A DNA stretch of 64,000 nucleotides from Schizochytrium sp. TIO01 (taxonomy: Eukaryota; Protista; Bigyra: Labyrinthulomycetes): assembly GCA_004764695.1 (NCBI GenBank), contig SMSO01000014.1, positions 1,049,648-1,113,647 on the forward strand. The letters are read 5' to 3'. Every line of letters begins with the position of its first letter. The first letter of the stretch is position 1. The translations under genes were made by a program, and so were the position numbers. Below the pieces are notes generated by a model. The model did no database searches, was not told the origin of the DNA, and saw nothing but the letters and a program-made list of their open reading frames with translations. Below are positions 31,281 to 39,696 of this stretch, piece after piece.

Positions 31281-33069
31281 GAGGGGGGGGGGGGGGCGGG
31301 GGCAAGCCATGTTTGACGTTCCTTCTCGATTGACGAGGGAAAGCATTGCGTTCTCTTTTTCTTCTTCTTCTTTTGCTTCTGCTTGCTTACTTGCTCCCTT
31401 CTTCTTACTGCTTGCCTTGGGCATTTGGAAAAGAGAAAGGGTCTGAGAACGCACTCTACCTTTGTTTCTTCCGGTGCTGCAACGTCTACAAGGAAACACA
31501 AAGACGAGTGACTCGTTGTTATATGCCCTTTTCTAGCACAGAGGAGATTTTAATTCTCCCTAACTTACAGTTTCCTACGACTTTTTGTCTCCTCTCACTG
31601 CAGCATCAGCAGCAACGGCCAGAGAACGATTGGTGGAAGGTCAAATCTTGTGAACACAGACCTCGAGAATTATTTTTCGAAGCCAGCTCGTCAGGTTTTC
31701 CTTGCAAATTCCGAGAAACACTCAAGGCTCTCTCGAAAACCCCAAGAATAGATCTTGATGAAGGCCTGCAAACGAGATTCGAAGGCCTCCAGAGGGCGCA
31801 GAGCTATCCTTACTTGTGCTGCACGTGCTGACAAATCCGTTTGCCTGCACATGCAACCCCAAAACACCCACTTTTTCCTTTGTGACGACGAAGGGACGAG
31901 CCAGACCAACCAAACTCAGAACAAAACGAGACTTAGGTGATCGACAGAAAACAAAACGTCTATTGTACGCGTGCGTCAAACAAAGAGGTGGAACACTTGT
32001 TTTCCTTGAGCAAGCATAACTGAAGGTACGTACTTTCCCGCTCTCAGTTTTTACCAGAACCCGAATTTATCTTAAATATTTTACTCCCTCTCTTTTACTT
32101 TCAAATGAACGGCCCAAAAGTAGAAGTTTTTATGAGGTGACCTCGAGCATGCCTATCAAAACGCTTCTTTCTTTCACAGCCAGAAGTTTCGTTGGTACTT
32201 CGCTCTCAAAACGAACATTTCTTTTCCCCGAGCACCAGGCCGAATCTCGATTTCCTCAGCTGATAAGACGTTTTGAGATTTCCAGGAACGTATGAAAGAA
32301 ATGCATGAAACGCTCCCGAAAACAGTTAATTTAACAGAAAGCATTTTTAGAGTATCCTGTCACCCCTGAACACTTTTAAAGGACACTCAGTTTGCGGCAA
32401 AAGCAAAATACAAGAGGATAAAAGAGACCAGAGACCAAAGTAGATGGTGTTTGATCGGCAGATAGTACCTAACTTGGTATTAACAAGTGCTACTACTACC
32501 ATCCAGAGTAGCTCACGACTCTTGATAGAAATCTTGCGAGGGATGGTGGAAGCGATGCATAGGGCACATTTAGGGTGATGCTGATGACGACGATGCGTGA
32601 CGTCTTGATACAAAAAGTGAAAAGTACATGGATGTGCCTGGAGTTCAAGGCCCAGCCAGAATCGTGCTTAGGCATGGAGATTGCAGACCGTCTAGCTGCT
32701 AATTCTAAGATTGGTTGCAGGGGGGGGGGGGGTTTAAACTCAGAAACTAGTCAGAGTATCGTTCCACTCTCGTAGCCCAAGGTAGCTCCTTCAATATTTC
32801 AGCTTGGGAAAACAATCACTCGTTGAACTAGCAGTTTGTATTGAATAATGTGACACTAATAGTACTCACTACCACGATCTTATAGTAACCTGGCACTAAG
32901 TAAGAATCTTTGCAGCAAAAAAAGTTCAGATTAGAAATTTAGTTGTCATCAGCTTCTCTCTGTACTTCACGAACATAGTAGGTGGGTACGCAAATGATTG
33001 AATTTAAAAGAGACAAATTATTGCAAAATATATCACTTCAACCTATTTAAAGCTTTCGGACTGAACTTG

Positions 33070-34386
33070 TTAACGAGATCGGGAGCGAGATCTACGTGAA
33101 CTACGACTACTGCTTTTGTGTCCGCGGATTCGTCTTTCAATTTCTGCGTCCGAGTCAGACTCGGAATCAGAATAGCGGCGACGAGATGAGGAATGGTGTT
33201 TATGCGATTTGTGGCTCTTCTTCTTCTTTTCCTTCTTATGTTTCTTCTTCTTGTTGTTGTTGCTGCTTGAGTCGCGATCACTATCATATTTACCTTGACG
33301 ATCAACGAAATCGTAGTCATATTCATCATCGCGGCCACGCTTTCGATGGTACCGTTCTTGCTCGCGATCGCGACTCAAGCTTCTGTCACGACCACTGCCA
33401 TATTTGTCTCGGCGGTAGTGAGAAGATGGGAGTCGAGAGCGATCGTCATCGCGATTGTTACGTTCATAATTAGACTCAGAGCGCGAGGCTCGGTCTCGTG
33501 AGCGATCTCTTGTTTTATGATAACTACTGCTTTGGCTGTGGTCTCTTGAAAACCTTCTTGAGCGATCATTGTGATGAGAGTACGCAACAGTCTCACTGCG
33601 TCCACCGAACGGCAAAGAAGATCCGCCACGTCCAGCGCTACCATGACTTCTAGAAATGGGATATGTTTGCCGTGGAGGCACACGATCGTACACATCGGCA
33701 GGGCGGGAAGATAGTTTTTCATTAAGCTCTTTCAGTTTGGCACGAACAAGTTTCCATCCATTGTATTGCTTACCGGTGAAATGGCTCAGAAGACGCTCAT
33801 CACTGTCGCTTCGCAGGATCAGGTTACCACTGATGGGGCATACCAGGTGTCGTCGCTGTGCATCAGGCACAACATATAACTTGTCTCTCTGGGCACGCAA
33901 GTTCTCCACACGCTTATATAAATCAAATGCCATCAAAACCTCGCCTTTCTCAGCCAGTGCTTGTAAGTTCTTCAAAAGCTCCTCCATCTCGTCCTCCAGC
34001 TGCACAACTTTGCGGGCGTTTGCCTGAATGTCATCGGGAGCTTCGTTTTTAATCCTCGCCAAGTTATCTGATATCCTGTTGTCTACCTTACGAACCATAT
34101 CCATGAGGAACTTGCGGGTATCCTCTTCGTATCCGTATCTTCGTTTTTCGTGCTCGCTGAGCTTTTCCCATTCCTCTTTGCAAGTGTCGTCTACGATTTT
34201 CGGGTTAGGTCCAAAGTAGTCAGATTTAGTACCCTTGAAAAGCTCGTAGGGTGAACACCCTACAAGGTACATCTTGTCCACCTCCGGGTCGGAAAAATGC
34301 CTTCGTCGACGGTTTGTGCGCTGCTCTGGTGCCAAGTTGCGCTCGGCGCCCATGAGCTCATCCAAGAGCGCTCGGTTTGTTTCCAT
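33070..34386 (-). CDS. LUC7: LUC7-like U1 snRNP splicing factor with RS/K-rich tail
   Basis: RALLDELMGAERN, FSDPEV..YL.G..PYELF..TKSD, YGYE, coiled coil, VCPISG..DERLLSHFTGKQY.GW, and a long RS/RD tail. Confidence 0.93.
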   Translation of the reverse strand: METNRALLDELMGAERNLAPEQRTNRRRRHFSDPEVDKMYLVGCSPYELFKGTKSDYFGPNPKIVDDTCKEEWEKLSEHEKRRYGYEEDTRKFLMDMVRKVDNRISDNLARIKNEAPDDIQANARKVVQLEDEMEELLKNLQALAEKGEVLMAFDLYKRVENLRAQRDKLYVVPDAQRRHLVCPISGNLILRSDSDERLLSHFTGKQYNGWKLVRAKLKELNEKLSSRPADVYDRVPPRQTYPISRSHGSAGRGGSSLPFGGRSETVAYSHHNDRSRRFSRDHSQSSSYHKTRDRSRDRASRSESNYERNNRDDDRSRLPSSHYRRDKYGSGRDRSLSRDREQERYHRKRGRDDEYDYDFVDRQGKYDSDRDSSSNNNKKKKHKKEKKKKSHKSHKHHSSSRRRYSDSESDSDAEIERRIRGHKSSSRSSRRSRSRSR

Positions 34387-34877
34387 CGCGCCGGCCCGTT
34401 TGTAAGCTGACCCCCCAATTACTGGAAAATGGGGTTGGGGACAAAGAGGAAGACAATCTCGGAGATCTCAGTCTACCTCCAAGGCACCAAACAGAGGCGC
34501 CGTGTCGATTGCGTTTTGCCTTCCTTGCACAATTGCAACTTCTCTCATCTTATTTAATTTTTTTAATTTTTTAATTCCTCTTGTCGTTGCTGCACATTGT
34601 CATTGTATAGAAAATATGGCGAATGGCTACCATTTAGGTACCATGCTAGTGAACAGTAAGATCAATTCTGGCGCGAGAATGATAAGAAGATAATACTCGT
34701 GAATTGCAAGTAAATAGTGCTGTCCAGGAAATGTAGATACTTCTTCTTGTTATAGATTTACAAACAATACTTTTTTCTTTTTTTTAAAAAAGGGTTAGAC
34801 TTTGAACATCTTTTTGCTTCTCAAATGCTGATAGGAATTGGAATAGTTGATCAATAGGAATATCGGTCGGAAAAGAC

Positions 34878-36830
34878 TCAAGACTGCCAGGAGCAGGCCC
34901 AGTGGTGCACTGCAAGGCAACCTTTAGCAGCATAATCCTTTGTGGATAGCGTCTCCTCAGGATTAGCAGTGTTTGACAAAGGGTACATGGTGACAGGCGG
35001 CAAAACAAGAACTGAGTTATCTCCCGAGACACGAGGCAGCACTGTTTTCGTAAAGTACCCGGGACCAGTCTTGGCAATAGTAGAGGTTGTCTCGGTAGCT
35101 TTTGTGAGATTTTCAGAGTCCTCCGCAGATAAGTAACTAGTTAGCATCCCACCAGTAAGATCTCTGAAGCTAGGGATGTCCTTTGTAAGGCCACTATTCA
35201 ATGCCTCCAGAATCGGGTGATGGGGAATGCTAGCAATGAAGGCATTGTTCACCTCCAGAGCACCAACATTTGAGAGACCACAAATAAAGCTAGCATTGAA
35301 GCGAGCCATCTCATTCATAAATTCAGAGATGGAACGAACACATTCAAAGTCAATATCAACGTAAACACCACCATATTGACGGAGGATCTCGTACCGTGCA
35401 ATGTCAGATTTCTCACCAAGATTTGAGGCATTTTCAAAAGCCTTGCGATTGACCATATCAAGCTGCTTACAGTCAGCATCGCGCCAGAAACGAAACGTCC
35501 ATCCCTCAGCATCCAGAAATCGTTTCCAAGTCTTCATCCATTCGCCGCGATTAGGAATATTCTTAGAGCCAAGCCAGATGTGGTGAACAATACGTGGAAT
35601 TTGCTCTCCTTTTGCTTCTTCGATATCCCTCCTCGGTCGAAACCAAAGGGAATTATAGCGTTCCGCAATATCATATGTCCAGGTTTTCTCCTCTTCTGCA
35701 GAAGCCCACAGCTCAGGGCGGTCGTGAATACTCTTGCATCCATCTTGTCCTTCTTGGAATGTCGCTGGAAGTGGTACGCGGCGCTCAAACCCACAGTTTG
35801 GGTACCGGCTGAGCATAGAGTCAAACCATGCATTCTTGTAGGGACTATACTTTTGCAGACGCATAGCGTCGGCAACTTGCTCAAGATTAGCTTCGCTGGC
35901 AAAATTTTGAGTGACTGCTACAGTCATATCAAGGTTGATGACAATATGCCACCAGCCCCGTGGAACAAACACAGTGTCACCGGGACCTTGCGTGAACTCG
36001 ATAACCCCCAAAGCCTCATGATCGAGCTGCGGCAAGACCTCTGCAAACCAGCGTTCTACGTTTACATCTTGACGAAATTGTTTCACAACTTCAGCATCTA
36101 CATCAGGTGGGATTAAAACCCAACGCTTGTGGCCTTCAAGAAGGGTGTTCCATGCAGAGGTGCCAACAGGATCATAGTGGATCCGTGTGCCAGAACGTGC
36201 AGGGCCAATAAGCATCCAACGAAAACGGGGTCGCCCTCCCATTTCTGGGCGTTCTCCCTCAGGGAGTTCATACAGGTCGCGACCTTCAAAGATCATCGGG
36301 ACACTGTAGCTTTGAAGGATCGCATCATGCGCAAGCTTTGACTTCTCATCAATTGCATTCTCCCGGTCACTGAGATCCTCGAAAAGATACAGTGGGCACT
36401 CATCGTACTCGCCACGACCTTGTGCATAGGATACATACTCCCGCAATGTAAACTTTTGTCCCGTGTACAACGCAAACGAAGCATCACCAAAGAGGTCAAC
36501 AAGCCTTTCACTAGTCCATGTTTTTGCAGCCCACTCATTTGCACATCCAAGAACGGCCATTGGTTTTCCGGGGCCCTCAAACTCGGTTTGGAACTCCTCT
36601 GCTGTCAGAGTTGAGACGTCACGAATTTCGAGGTCTCCACAATGAATCCTTGCGCGAGCATCGTCGGTGTTCGCCTCTTCAATAAAACGATCTAGTTGCT
36701 CCTGCCTTGATGCAGCTGTGCTCAATGCTCCATCAGCACCAGATGTCTCCTCCTCGTCAATTTCTTCGTCGTCATCACTATCAGCCAAGGCGGCCGCCAT
36801 GGCAAAGAGGTCCAAAGCACCTTCAGCCAT
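34878..36830 (-). CDS. Fusion of a JMJD6-like JmjC 2-oxoglutarate/Fe(II) oxygenase and a GT32 (Gly_transf_sug, DxD) glycosyltransferase
   Basis: Single 650-aa ORF. aa ~66-345: RWMLIGPARSGTRIHYDPVGTSAWNTLLEGHKRW..PGDTVFVPRGWWHIVINLDMTVAVTQNFAS (H218, D220, H295). aa ~410-650: IPRIVHHIWLG, KSDIARYEILRQYGGVYVDIDF, NNAFIASIPHHP, TGPG, HHWACSW. No signal peptide. Confidence 0.92.
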   Translation of the reverse strand: MAEGALDLFAMAAALADSDDDEEIDEEETSGADGALSTAASRQEQLDRFIEEANTDDARARIHCGDLEIRDVSTLTAEEFQTEFEGPGKPMAVLGCANEWAAKTWTSERLVDLFGDASFALYTGQKFTLREYVSYAQGRGEYDECPLYLFEDLSDRENAIDEKSKLAHDAILQSYSVPMIFEGRDLYELPEGERPEMGGRPRFRWMLIGPARSGTRIHYDPVGTSAWNTLLEGHKRWVLIPPDVDAEVVKQFRQDVNVERWFAEVLPQLDHEALGVIEFTQGPGDTVFVPRGWWHIVINLDMTVAVTQNFASEANLEQVADAMRLQKYSPYKNAWFDSMLSRYPNCGFERRVPLPATFQEGQDGCKSIHDRPELWASAEEEKTWTYDIAERYNSLWFRPRRDIEEAKGEQIPRIVHHIWLGSKNIPNRGEWMKTWKRFLDAEGWTFRFWRDADCKQLDMVNRKAFENASNLGEKSDIARYEILRQYGGVYVDIDFECVRSISEFMNEMARFNASFICGLSNVGALEVNNAFIASIPHHPILEALNSGLTKDIPSFRDLTGGMLTSYLSAEDSENLTKATETTSTIAKTGPGYFTKTVLPRVSGDNSVLVLPPVTMYPLSNTANPEETLSTKDYAAKGCLAVHHWACSWQS

Positions 36831-37215
36831 CTTTACGGGCTGTGGCCTTCTTCCACCAAAACCTAGAGCTCCTTGCTCGCAATTACCAAATGCGCCTTGT
36901 CGGATTTGCAGGAATCCTCAGAAGCCAGAATGGTCGCATGCGAAGCTCCTCGTGAATCGCAATTGCATTTAATCCATTGAAATGCTTGCCATCGATTCCT
37001 TCGGACGCCTCACACAAATGCTATAAGTAATTTATAGCGCTTTTTAAAGTGGGTTATAGACTTGTTACGAGTGAACAATATCTAAATCTCCTCAATAGAC
37101 AATTCCTATAATTCATTATCATGAAAGAGATGTGAAAATAACCAGAAAGACCGCCACAACTCTAATCAAATGGATAATGTGGGAGACAGCAAACCACAAT
37201 CAATGAGACAAAGTC

Positions 37216-39696
37216 ATGGCTCCTGCGCGAATGTCCAGCGCCTTGGCGGGCGGGAGAACTCAGGGAAGTACCCTTTCACGTAGACTTCCGTCACCACGAA
37301 CTCGAAGCCTCTCAGGAGGCTTGGCTTCTTCAGGAGTGCTAAGCGGGACCACTTCTGCGCATCTTGAAGATTGTCAAGGATCTGCTCAGGAACCATCTTC
37401 ATTATCGCCAACAAGAACTTCATCAAATTCGGTAGGCTCTGCATCATTGCGAGATGAAGGATCATCATCTCCGTTTGCAACGAGACCATCACTAATAAAC
37501 TCGCCTTCATCGGCAAGGTGCCTCCTTCCAGAACGAGATCCGTTTGGGATTCAAGAAAACAACAGTCAAAGACCAACAAGGCGATGGAGTGCAATTCTTG
37601 GATCGCATGATTTGATTGCACCTGCTCGAAACAATGATCATACGCAGGGCGACCGATCTAGGGACATTCCACGCCGACCGAAACGTACCCGGTCGAATGA
37701 TTTGAGTACACAGTATAGCGAATTTACAGCCCAATCGCTGGCTCAGGCTGCAGCGCAAGCTTCATCGTGGGGTGTCACAGATAGCAGGAAAAACATCATG
37801 GGTACTGTAGTCTTTCATGTAATAGCGCTTCGAGCTCTTGTTTTGGGGTTGGTTGCAGGAGTTATTCTGCTTGGTGTACAATCTGGTCTGAATGCTATCG
37901 GCGTCTCTGAATGGCTTGGCCTTGTAGAACAGGGAAGCTGTGCAGTTGCAATGCCGTCAAATGCTCAAGCATTGCAGTCATTAGAAGATGGGCGACTTTC
38001 TTGCCGGGATGCAAAACTACACGACCAAGTGCATCTTATTGGATCCGACCTACATGTGACTTGGGCCACTTCTCTCACGGAGTGCTGTGCGAAATGCACC
38101 CAGCGTCGTGCTTGCATAGCACTAAGCTACAATATTGTTCAACGGCGATGCGTGCTCTTTAAAGGTACTGTTTCTGAAGCAATGCAATCAAGCTGGACAC
38201 GATCATTTATTTTACAGCCCGCCTTGGCTCAAGCGGACATGGGCAATGTTCGCGCTGCAAGAGAAACTGAACGATGGGATGTTGAGGTTTCTTTCCAGCG
38301 TGCCCTGGCGCCCCCTTCATTCACAGTGGAAACCCAATACAGAGATCCAGTCTCCCGAAACAAACGTACTCGAACTGACTACCGGGACCACGTCGCAGGG
38401 GCTCTGAGGGACCTTGGACTTGTTCCCATAGCACTCCCGACAGATGTGACAACTCTCGATGTGATTTGGGGACTGCATTGGGATAGCCAGAAAAAATTCA
38501 CATCTGCCGGATTGCACTCCTGGCAGTTACTCAATATGGTTCCAGGTGTCTTGGATCAAACTATTGGAGAAAAGGATTCCCTGCACCGCTTAGTTCAGGA
38601 TTGTCGAAAACGTTATGGCACTGATCTAGTTGATAGTTTCATGCCTCGATCATACATGCTTCCTGAAGATGAAGATGAGATTGTCGACCCCAACGCAATA
38701 TGGATATGGAAACCACTGCGATCTTGGTCTGGGGATGGTATTTCTGTTCTTACAGGTGAGCACGCAAAGGAACGTCTTTTACGCAAACGTTCTTCTTCAC
38801 AAACTAACGTAATTCTACAGACCTATATATTAAACCCACTTACGTTATCAGGGTACAAATTTGACACCCGATGGTGGGTAGTTATTACAAGTGTAAATCC
38901 TTTGCGGGTGTACTCCGTAGAAGATGCGTATGTCCGTCCCGCTGCAGTGCCATACCGTAGTGACATTCCTGGTCTGGCAGATAAATGTGTTCATGTAACA
39001 AATGGTAAGGTCTTTAAGCAATGCAAAGGGTCGAAAAGTTTCCCTATAAAGCGAGTGAATGATCCCCTTTTTATGAACAAGTTACGCGATGCATATAACA
39101 GGGATCTCGATCCAAACTTAGCTTCGCGAATCGAGAAGACCTTAATTTCTCGAACACAAATTGCCATGTTGAAGACCCTCTTGCTCAGTCTGCCAATTTT
39201 GAAACAGACTCATAACTGGACTGCTGCACAACACTTCCAGCTTCTTGCGTTCGATATAATCTACGATTCAGACACTGGTGCGCCGTGGGTTGAAGAGGTT
39301 AACAGCAATGGTTTTCTAGGAACTGGCATGATTGAAGTTTCATCTGCTGTCGGATCTGATATCCTTAGAGACATGTTCACGCTTGTGGGCGTTGCAGGTT
39401 ATGATAGATCGGCCTACCAAACATCTCTTGAACGATATTTCATGCGCGATTCAGGAAGCGAGCCTCCTTCTTTGGATATTTTATCGCCTTTACAAGCCTC
39501 GATTGATGAATTGTATGCTTCGCAGCGCTCCTGGAAAATGCTGTACCCGTTGCCACTTCGCGAATCAAGTGACACTGACATCCAATCGCTAATTAGGATG
39601 GCGGACCACGATGCTTCCCATGCACAGCTACTACGAGATGTTCTTGCGAGTCTTCCAGGGAGCCCTGCTGTCTTAGGGTACGTAAAGTCAGCTTAA
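37216..39696 (+). CDS. Tubulin-tyrosine-ligase-family (TTL/TTLL) ATP-grasp protein with N-terminal TM helix and PAN/apple domain
   Basis: TM at aa ~198-225. PAN-like CRD..IGSDL..TSLTECCAKCTQRRACIALSY..RRCVLFK. TTL motifs: FMPRSYMLP, WIWKP..SGDGI, ILQTYILNPL..GYKFDTRWWVVITSVNPLRVY, HVTN, FQLLAFDII..PWVEEVN. Confidence 0.88.
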   Translation: MAPARMSSALAGGRTQGSTLSRRLPSPRTRSLSGGLASSGVLSGTTSAHLEDCQGSAQEPSSLSPTRTSSNSVGSASLRDEGSSSPFATRPSLINSPSSARCLLPERDPFGIQENNSQRPTRRWSAILGSHDLIAPARNNDHTQGDRSRDIPRRPKRTRSNDLSTQYSEFTAQSLAQAAAQASSWGVTDSRKNIMGTVVFHVIALRALVLGLVAGVILLGVQSGLNAIGVSEWLGLVEQGSCAVAMPSNAQALQSLEDGRLSCRDAKLHDQVHLIGSDLHVTWATSLTECCAKCTQRRACIALSYNIVQRRCVLFKGTVSEAMQSSWTRSFILQPALAQADMGNVRAARETERWDVEVSFQRALAPPSFTVETQYRDPVSRNKRTRTDYRDHVAGALRDLGLVPIALPTDVTTLDVIWGLHWDSQKKFTSAGLHSWQLLNMVPGVLDQTIGEKDSLHRLVQDCRKRYGTDLVDSFMPRSYMLPEDEDEIVDPNAIWIWKPLRSWSGDGISVLTGEHAKERLLRKRSSSQTNVILQTYILNPLTLSGYKFDTRWWVVITSVNPLRVYSVEDAYVRPAAVPYRSDIPGLADKCVHVTNGKVFKQCKGSKSFPIKRVNDPLFMNKLRDAYNRDLDPNLASRIEKTLISRTQIAMLKTLLLSLPILKQTHNWTAAQHFQLLAFDIIYDSDTGAPWVEEVNSNGFLGTGMIEVSSAVGSDILRDMFTLVGVAGYDRSAYQTSLERYFMRDSGSEPPSLDILSPLQASIDELYASQRSWKMLYPLPLRESSDTDIQSLIRMADHDASHAQLLRDVLASLPGSPAVLGYVKSA

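Follow-up and report, generated by a model that had tools for sequence, protein, structure and literature searches.

An intron-free gene joins a JMJD6-like oxygenase to a GT32 glycosyltransferase

We analyzed a 64,000-nucleotide stretch of the genome of the thraustochytrid Schizochytrium sp. TIO01 (contig SMSO01000014.1, positions 1,049,648 to 1,113,647 of the forward strand), referred to as the window, whose own numbering is used below. On its minus strand, positions 34878-36830 hold an intron-free open reading frame (ORF) of 650 amino acids in a single uninterrupted frame, in which a JMJD6-like 2-oxoglutarate (2OG)/Fe(II) oxygenase domain of the JmjC type is followed by a glycosyltransferase (GT) domain of family GT32. 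A stop codon lies in the same frame 29 codons 5′ of the ATG. The features of the gene and its product are given below from the N-terminus onward, all on the minus strand, with confidence of structure models expressed as the predicted local distance difference test (pLDDT).

34816..36952: transcript-like unit, with a 3′ untranslated region (UTR) of about 62 nt, reaching 155 nt in one run, and a 5′ UTR of about 122 nt
34878..36830: complete 650-amino-acid coding sequence, stop codon at 34878-34880 (ORF listing; 99%-identical ORF in MMETSP)
36783..36830: N-terminal motif M-A/E-E-x-x-LDLFAMAAALA, residues 1-16, common to every family member whether or not it has the GT half
36636..36782: variable acidic linker, residues 17-65, with little conservation in alignment A1 and pLDDT below 50
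35871..36635: JMJD6-like JmjC/cupin 2OG-Fe(II) oxygenase domain, residues 66-320 (Pfam JmjC and Cupin_8; human JMJD6 structures)
36171..36179: H218-Y-D220, first and second Fe(II) ligands, matching the HxD of JMJD6 in alignment and invariant in the family
35946..35948: H295, the third Fe(II) ligand, aligned to JMJD6 and invariant in the family
35736..35870: inter-domain region, residues 321-365, helical, with invariant P355 (alignment A1, models)
35616..35735: extension of helices that precedes the GT domain, residues 366-405, motif LW-x8-W-x7-RY (modelled helices, pLDDT 83-92)
34881..35615: GT32 catalytic domain of GT-A fold, retaining-type, residues 406-650 (Pfam PF04488, model)
35349..35357: D492-I-D494, the DxD metal/UDP-sugar motif, aligned to the DxD of TcdA, with no variation at D492 and D494 (positions D132 and D134 in alignment A2) across 62 sequences

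The gene is real, single and expressed, well beyond what chance would give, and an artefact of assembly or annotation can in effect be set aside. The MMETSP transcriptome holds an ORF of 650 amino acids, labelled 'complete' and 99% identical to the fusion, on a 2217-nt contig. We also mapped Logan contigs of four runs, each from a different study, over window positions 33000-38500; the RNA label of these runs is a guess, and we relied on contig boundaries and the MMETSP record, not on depth. Whole contigs ended just beyond the ORF in three of the four studies, a transcript-like pattern that agrees with MMETSP:

34816-36952: contig X4, 2137 nt, whole
34723-36952: contig X8, whole
34792-36943: contig X6, in two pieces

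The two neighboring genes lie on contigs of their own, at depths differing from those of the fusion-gene contigs. Contigs from at least four studies were concordant, the ORF carried no indels, and the mapped contigs contained no joints, so the gene has no intron.

The Kyte-Doolittle maximum of the protein (19-residue window) is only 1.21 and falls inside the GT fold, so the protein has neither a transmembrane segment nor a signal peptide. It is acidic, with 105 Asp/Glu residues against 65 Lys/Arg, and contains no Lys/Arg-rich cluster (no 7-residue window with at least 5 such residues). An earlier note, made from the letters alone, had described one frame with a complete JmjC domain, a complete GT32 domain and no signal peptide or transmembrane segment, and the ORF listing, Pfam domains and hydropathy concur. 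It had proposed looking for reads across about 35600-35800; one MMETSP transcript and the whole contigs run through both halves. It had also named two separate genes, in transcripts or in related genomes, as the finding that would speak against it, and instead distant relatives carry the same architecture.

Both halves retain their catalytic residues

The JmjC half is matched by PF02373 (JmjC) at residues 205-310 (2e-17, 63.9 bits against a curated cut-off of 24) and by PF13621 (Cupin_8) at residues 78-312 (53.8 bits against 27.4). Human JMJD6 crystal structures are colinear with residues 66-320 (E=1.3e-46), and identity to JMJD6 proteins is 38-45%. The Fe(II) ligands H218, D220 and H295 and the 2OG-site residues N228, K235 and T307, all correctly numbered and read as colinear with JMJD6 in the earlier note, are invariant in 8/8 aligned family members. 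Judged by these residues, the JmjC half is a divergent yet catalytically intact JMJD6-like oxygenase.

It is nevertheless set apart from JMJD6 proper. The JmjC halves of the fusion family form one clade on a long stem (support 100), and a branch with support 98 parts this clade from every canonical and F-box JMJD6 protein, so that the window's JmjC half groups apart from animal and protist JMJD6. Neither a Ser-rich tail nor basic clusters are present, the C-terminus being the GT32 domain. The same genome (64 Mb in 37 contigs, as searched) encodes a separate canonical JMJD6 with a Ser-rich tail (L002), which joins P0178 within the canonical group at support 99, and two genes, L003 and L004, whose JmjC domains fall in the F-box JMJD6 group. 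Pfam recognizes the F-box in L004, the one of the two that was scanned; the frame of L003 ran off the locus. As to the order of GT gain and GT loss, the JmjC tree is a polytomy.

The GT half is matched by PF04488 (Gly_transf_sug) at residues 463-505 (9e-10, 39.6 bits against a curated cut-off of 23). Its motifs, IPRIVHHIWLG at 411-421, SDIARYEIL..GGVYVDID at 475-494, TGPG at 588-591 and HHWACSW at 642-648, all lie where the earlier note had placed them. A full-length AlphaFold model was poor (pLDDT 56.6 from an 8-sequence alignment) and was left out of the fold search. The model of the GT module (residues 361-650), built from a 62-sequence alignment, reached a mean pLDDT of 88.1; its top Foldseek match was the GT32 enzyme Och1 (9n3s, E=8.8e-9, probability 1.00), followed by the GT domains of SetA, YeGT, PaToxG and TcdA. 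As modelled, the GT half has a retaining-type GT-A fold, which by itself does not tell a glycan acceptor from a protein hydroxyl. The helical LW..W..RY extension also precedes the GT32 domain in the standalone proteins P0089 and P0091, as well as in P0229 and P0260; because it is common to standalone relatives, it belongs to the GT module rather than being a linker.

By sequence, the nearest relatives of the GT half are eukaryotic proteins of 300-400 amino acids without a transmembrane segment or hydrophobic anchor, among them proteins of Pythium oligandrum, Aphanomyces stellatus, Nannochloropsis oceanica and Chattonella subsalsa. The segment GLSNVGALEVNN, in which the earlier note had seen a likeness to Glt1-like GT32 enzymes, is a signature motif of this soluble eukaryotic GT32 clade. 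Signal-peptide-bearing and bacterial members fall in a separate, well-supported GT32 clade, and the intact GT halves of the fusions form a single clade (support 97). A search of the ESM Atlas returned nothing beyond generic small viral GT32 clusters.

The fusion is rare and its GT half has decayed in close relatives

An exhaustive HMMER search over 1.84 billion representative proteins found only a handful, in about six clusters, that were matched by both halves. The fusions recovered were:

P0002/P0084: fusion, from the thraustochytrid Mucochytrium quahogii
P0003/P0085: fusion
P0004: fusion
P0005: fusion, fragment
P0260: fusion, N-truncated, with a long linker

UniProt names the Mucochytrium protein just 'JmjC domain-containing protein'. 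The fusion lineages are only 41-45% identical to one another. In P0006 and P0007 (569 and 579 amino acids) the GT half has decayed, with the DxD, TGPG and HHW motifs gone and part of the domain deleted, and the JmjC site is intact; P0008, P0162 and P0166 consist of the JmjC half with no GT half. The motif M-(A/E)-E-x-x-LDLFAMAAALA is common to fusions, decayed members and JmjC-only members alike. On these sequence comparisons, the simplest reading would be one fusion event followed by vertical descent. No relatives stand closer to the window protein than P0006 and P0007, which carry the JGI name 'histone arginine demethylase JMJD6'. A further protein, P0163 (697 amino acids, a EukProt Trinity transcript), contains tandem JMJD6-like JmjC domains at residues 66-328 and 414-664.

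A GT32 domain of the same soluble clade also occurs in a second kind of JmjC fusion. P0229 (1040 amino acids), found on two Logan contigs of which the longest measures 4017 nt, combines a JmjC domain, a GT8 domain and the GT32 domain in one protein. The best solved match of its GT8 domain is Pythium ultimum Gat1 (6mw5, 2.2e-73; glycogenins reach 6e-34 at best), an entry titled 'UDP-galactose:glucoside-Skp1 alpha-D-galactosyltransferase'; a GT32 of this clade is thus physically joined to a Gat1-type GT8. The P0229 JmjC domain is only 25% identical to that of the window protein and groups at support 99 with the JmjC domain of another protein of the window's genome (L005), so that P0229 represents an independent fusion with another JmjC subfamily. 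In the GT tree its GT32 domain falls among standalone members, outside the JMJD6-fusion clade. The L005 gene (L005:1267-3399, minus strand, G000:C4) encodes a 711-amino-acid protein with a family-16 lysine methyltransferase domain (Methyltransf_16) and a JmjC domain.

The genome encodes other steps of the Skp1 glycosylation pathway

Modification of Skp1 by prolyl hydroxylation and glycosylation is the best-understood oxygen-sensing mechanism of protists, and we know of no substrates for the JMJD6-type oxygenases associated with Skp1. In Toxoplasma gondii, the GT32 enzyme Glt1 is the UDP-Glc:fucoside alpha1,3-glucosyltransferase of this pathway (PMC6939170; bioRxiv 10.1101/764241). Gat1 adds the fifth Skp1 sugar onto the glucose placed by Glt1 (bioRxiv 10.1101/764241), and Gat1 genes co-distribute with Glt1-like genes (bioRxiv 10.1101/764241; PMC6939170).

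The window's genome contains a PhyA-GT60 fusion, a Gat1 orthologue and a modifiable Skp1. The first is a single ORF of 649 amino acids that joins a PHD2/PhyA-type prolyl 4-hydroxylase to a GT60 GlcNAc-transferase, which is the PhyA-Gnt1 arrangement. The Gat1 orthologue matches 6mw5 at 2.4e-49 against 6e-22 for glycogenin.

L036:973-2919 (G000:C24, about 5133942-5135888), plus strand: PhyA-Gnt1 ORF
L026:1174-2148 (G000:C13, about 5086009-5086983), plus strand: Gat1 orthologue, with a Ser/Thr/Pro-rich insert near the N-terminus

The main Skp1 (L048) has a C-terminus ending in ...NDFTPEEEARVRDENKW, in which NDFTPEEE contains the modifiable proline. Three Skp1-domain genes (L048-L050) lie within about 5 kb (G000:C33:1653784-1659087), and only the first, of 172 amino acids, is a strong Skp1 match with the NDFTPEEE proline.

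Searching the genome with the window GT half and the GT32 domain of P0229 revealed no other GT32 of the soluble clade; the next matches were distant GT32 paralogues (E of about 1e-7 to 1e-6). If the organism makes a Skp1 pentasaccharide of the Toxoplasma/Pythium type, the fusion is therefore its sole Glt1 candidate. The Gat1 it has retained depends on an acceptor that ends in glucose, and hence the genome needs a Glt1. Among proteins of about 600 amino acids with a C-terminal GT32 domain, P0072, P0074, P0077 and P0161 were considered as candidates for apicomplexan Glt1 and proved uninformative: upstream of the GT32 domain, Pfam gave at most a sub-cut-off NBR1-like Ig match in the first three and none in P0161. 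No named Toxoplasma protein appeared among the matches of our sequence searches, the exhaustive search included.

A candidate Skp1 glucosyltransferase that carries an oxygenase

We tentatively favor, with a probability of roughly 0.45, the explanation that the protein is a Glt1-type Skp1 glucosyltransferase carrying an intact JMJD6-like oxygenase, which is thereby brought to Skp1 or to the Skp1-cullin-F-box (SCF) complex. It would be a lineage-restricted, bifunctional cytoplasmic enzyme of thraustochytrids, whose C-terminal half, as the Glt1 orthologue, would act as a UDP-Glc-dependent alpha-glucosyltransferase and add the fourth sugar to the hydroxyproline-linked Skp1 glycan. The fusion would tether the JmjC oxygenase to the same client, Skp1 or SCF, and the JmjC half would probably perform a second O2-dependent hydroxylation, most likely of lysine, on Skp1 or on a Skp1-bound protein. 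Here we infer that the GT half is orthologous to Glt1, that the JmjC half acts on Skp1/SCF and that lysine is the modified residue. By a Rosetta-stone argument, fusion to a probable Glt1 speaks for a client common to JmjC hydroxylases and the terminal Skp1 glycosyltransferases, and the independent JmjC, Gat1 and GT32 fusion in P0229 strengthens that argument. The earlier note had raised a tie to the oxygen-sensing Skp1 glycan as a second option; that tie has gained independent support from P0229 and from the pathway genes with their sole Glt1-type candidate, and it stays a reading. If it is true, the Glt1 step of Labyrinthulomycetes would be identified, and thraustochytrids are genetically tractable.

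A physical link between JMJD6-type proteins and Skp1 has precedents, as the F-box JMJD6 homologues JcdI of Dictyostelium and FBXO13 of Toxoplasma bind Skp1, and how abundant or well represented these proteins are depends on whether Skp1 is hydroxylated and glycosylated (PMC9485057, PMC11570480). We predicted the complex of the full-length fusion with the genome's Skp1 and obtained a verdict of 'weak support' with a score of 0.50, the best of three controls scoring 0.00. The runs showed contact agreement of at least 41% and a partner pLDDT of at least 72. Of 78 solved complexes, 51 attained the mark used, as did 2 of 108 mismatched pairs; scores of 0.60 or below comprised only 5 of the 78 solved complexes and all 4 of the mismatches (of 180) that passed. 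As a modelled result, this counts as no more than a small nudge toward the Glt1-type explanation.

Several observations weigh against that explanation. The complex predicted with Skp1 has weak support and yields no interface, and a Pfam search (E<=0.1) of the fusion detected neither an F-box nor any other motif known to bind Skp1. The deep branches of the GT tree have poor resolution, and the case for Glt1 orthology of the GT half is circumstantial. By analogy, PhyA-Gnt1 of the same genome, in which hydroxylation and glycosylation fall on one residue, favors the rival discussed next. We also considered the conserved N-terminal motif as a possible F-box and rejected it, since hhalign, comparing the N-terminal profile with the N-termini of five homologues, two of them with a Pfam F-box (L004 and P0041), gave a probability of 0.07%.

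The idea to which the earlier note gave first place, a self-contained enzyme that hydroxylates and then glycosylates, we regard as unlikely. In that scheme the JmjC half would turn lysine of nucleocytoplasmic proteins into hydroxylysine, to which the GT32 half would add a hexose, with Gat1 adding galactose in P0229-type proteins to yield Gal-Glc-hydroxylysine. It draws on the two independent fusions of a lysyl-hydroxylase-type JmjC domain to this GT32 clade (JMJD6-like and the P0229 subfamily), on the precedent within the same genome of a hydroxylase joined to a GT that uses its product, PhyA-Gnt1, and on the closest folds besides Och1, since SetA, YeGT, PaToxG and TcdA glycosylate side-chain hydroxyls of cytosolic proteins; moreover, Gat1 accepts simple terminal-glucose acceptors, at low efficiency (bioRxiv 10.1101/764241). 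But the relatives with a decayed GT (P0006/P0007) or none (P0008/P0162/P0166) keep the invariant JmjC site, so the JmjC product needs no GT in cis, and standalone GT32 proteins of the clade occur in organisms without such a fusion. The retained Gat1 requires a Glt1 for which this gene is the genome's only candidate, and our literature search found no hydroxylysine glycan from JMJD6-type enzymes.

The dispensability of the GT half in several relatives, together with an adjoining gene for a LUC7 arginine/serine (RS) protein and the possibility of neutral gene fusions, would also suit two independent, merely co-expressed activities, with a JMJD6 paralogue serving clients of its own (splicing factors with an RS domain, LUC7 for example) and a Glt1-type GT acting on Skp1 without a common substrate. 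We consider this quite improbable: the fusion has been kept across lineages only 41-45% identical, a second JmjC subfamily was independently fused to the same GT32 clade, and a canonical JMJD6 whose tail is rich in Ser (L002) is already present in the genome, against which the fused copy lacks a poly-Ser tail and Lys/Arg clusters. That adjacent genes were merged by the assembly, or that a stop or intron was missed, has nothing in its favor and is scarcely credible given the uninterrupted genomic frame, the same ORF in an independent transcriptome, agreeing indel-free contigs from at least four studies, and recurrence of the architecture in distant relatives.

A wider proposition spans the Glt1-type explanation and the hydroxylysine scheme: JmjC hydroxylases may be unrecognized participants in the oxygen-sensing Skp1 glycosylation of stramenopiles, either through a second O2-dependent hydroxylation of Skp1 or an SCF partner, coupled within a single polypeptide to the terminal Glt1 and Gat1 steps, or with Glt1 and Gat1 in a second role, building a new Gal-Glc glycan on hydroxylysine that JmjC enzymes have made in cytoplasmic or nuclear proteins. 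The argument for a JmjC role in this system is that two independent fusions exist, JMJD6-like with GT32 and, in P0229, JmjC with Gat1 and GT32. As formulated, we hold the proposition to be doubtful, if worth entertaining.

Comparison with known systems

Compared with Toxoplasma Glt1 and the Glt1-like proteins of stramenopiles, to which it is likened by family and context, the window protein is likewise a cytoplasmic GT32 enzyme in a genome with PhyA, Gnt1, Gat1 and a Skp1 bearing the target proline, and its GT32 clade is physically joined to Gat1 in P0229. It differs in its additional N-terminal JMJD6-like oxygenase, which is undescribed for Glt1 in the literature searched. With the lysyl-5-hydroxylase JMJD6 of humans and protist JMJD6a it shares the HxD...H triad and the 2OG-site Asn, Lys and Thr, but it falls in a clade apart, which has a long stem and an N-terminal motif of its own, has no poly-Ser tail or Lys/Arg clusters, and is fused to a GT. 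Like JcdI and JcdH of Dictyostelium and FBXO13/JMJD6b of Toxoplasma, it is a JMJD6-related oxygenase with a tie to Skp1, here proposed; theirs runs through an F-box, whereas that of the window protein would run through a Skp1 glycosyltransferase domain.

PhyA-Gnt1, reported for Pythium ultimum, is a dual-function prolyl hydroxylase and GlcNAc-transferase. It and the window protein both combine a cytoplasmic 2OG oxygenase with a GT of the Skp1 pathway, a membership that for the window protein would follow from our interpretation; PhyA-Gnt1 pairs a PHD-type prolyl 4-hydroxylase with GT60, and its GT uses the hydroxylated residue, whereas the window protein pairs JmjC with GT32. Collagen LH3/PLOD3 and mimivirus L230 hold a lysyl hydroxylase and a glycosyltransferase in one chain. 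With these the window protein shares a single polypeptide comprising a 2OG oxygenase, which may act on lysine, and a GT-A glycosyltransferase, but by analogy only: the families are unrelated, LH3/PLOD3 and L230, secretory or viral enzymes, have collagen as their substrate, and with its JmjC and GT32 domains and no signal peptide the window protein is not of the PLOD type. With Och1, SetA, YeGT, PaToxG and the TcdA/TcdB GT domains it shares the GGxYxDxD and N-terminal HxxW(I/L)G motifs at just 10-17% identity, and it is of a eukaryotic housekeeping type without toxin delivery or targeting modules.

The earlier note knew of no described JMJD6-GT32 fusion, and our literature search likewise found no JmjC domain with GT32 and no fusion of JMJD6 to a glycosyltransferase. 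A published phylogeny of protist JMJD6 proteins distinguishes three JMJD6 groups and JMJD4 and includes no such architecture. Both domains and the pathway are known; the architecture and its implications are new.

Neighboring genes

The next gene downstream of the fusion gene, at window positions 33070-34386 on the minus strand, encodes a LUC7-family RS/K-rich splicing protein (Pfam LUC7, 3e-50) whose start codon lies 491 bp past the fusion-gene stop. LUC7L2 is a reported JMJD6 substrate. On the other side, window positions 37216-39696 on the plus strand encode an 826-amino-acid protein in which a PAN/apple domain (residues 265-321) lies ahead of a tubulin-tyrosine-ligase-family domain (residues 436-701); this gene is divergent in orientation from the fusion gene.

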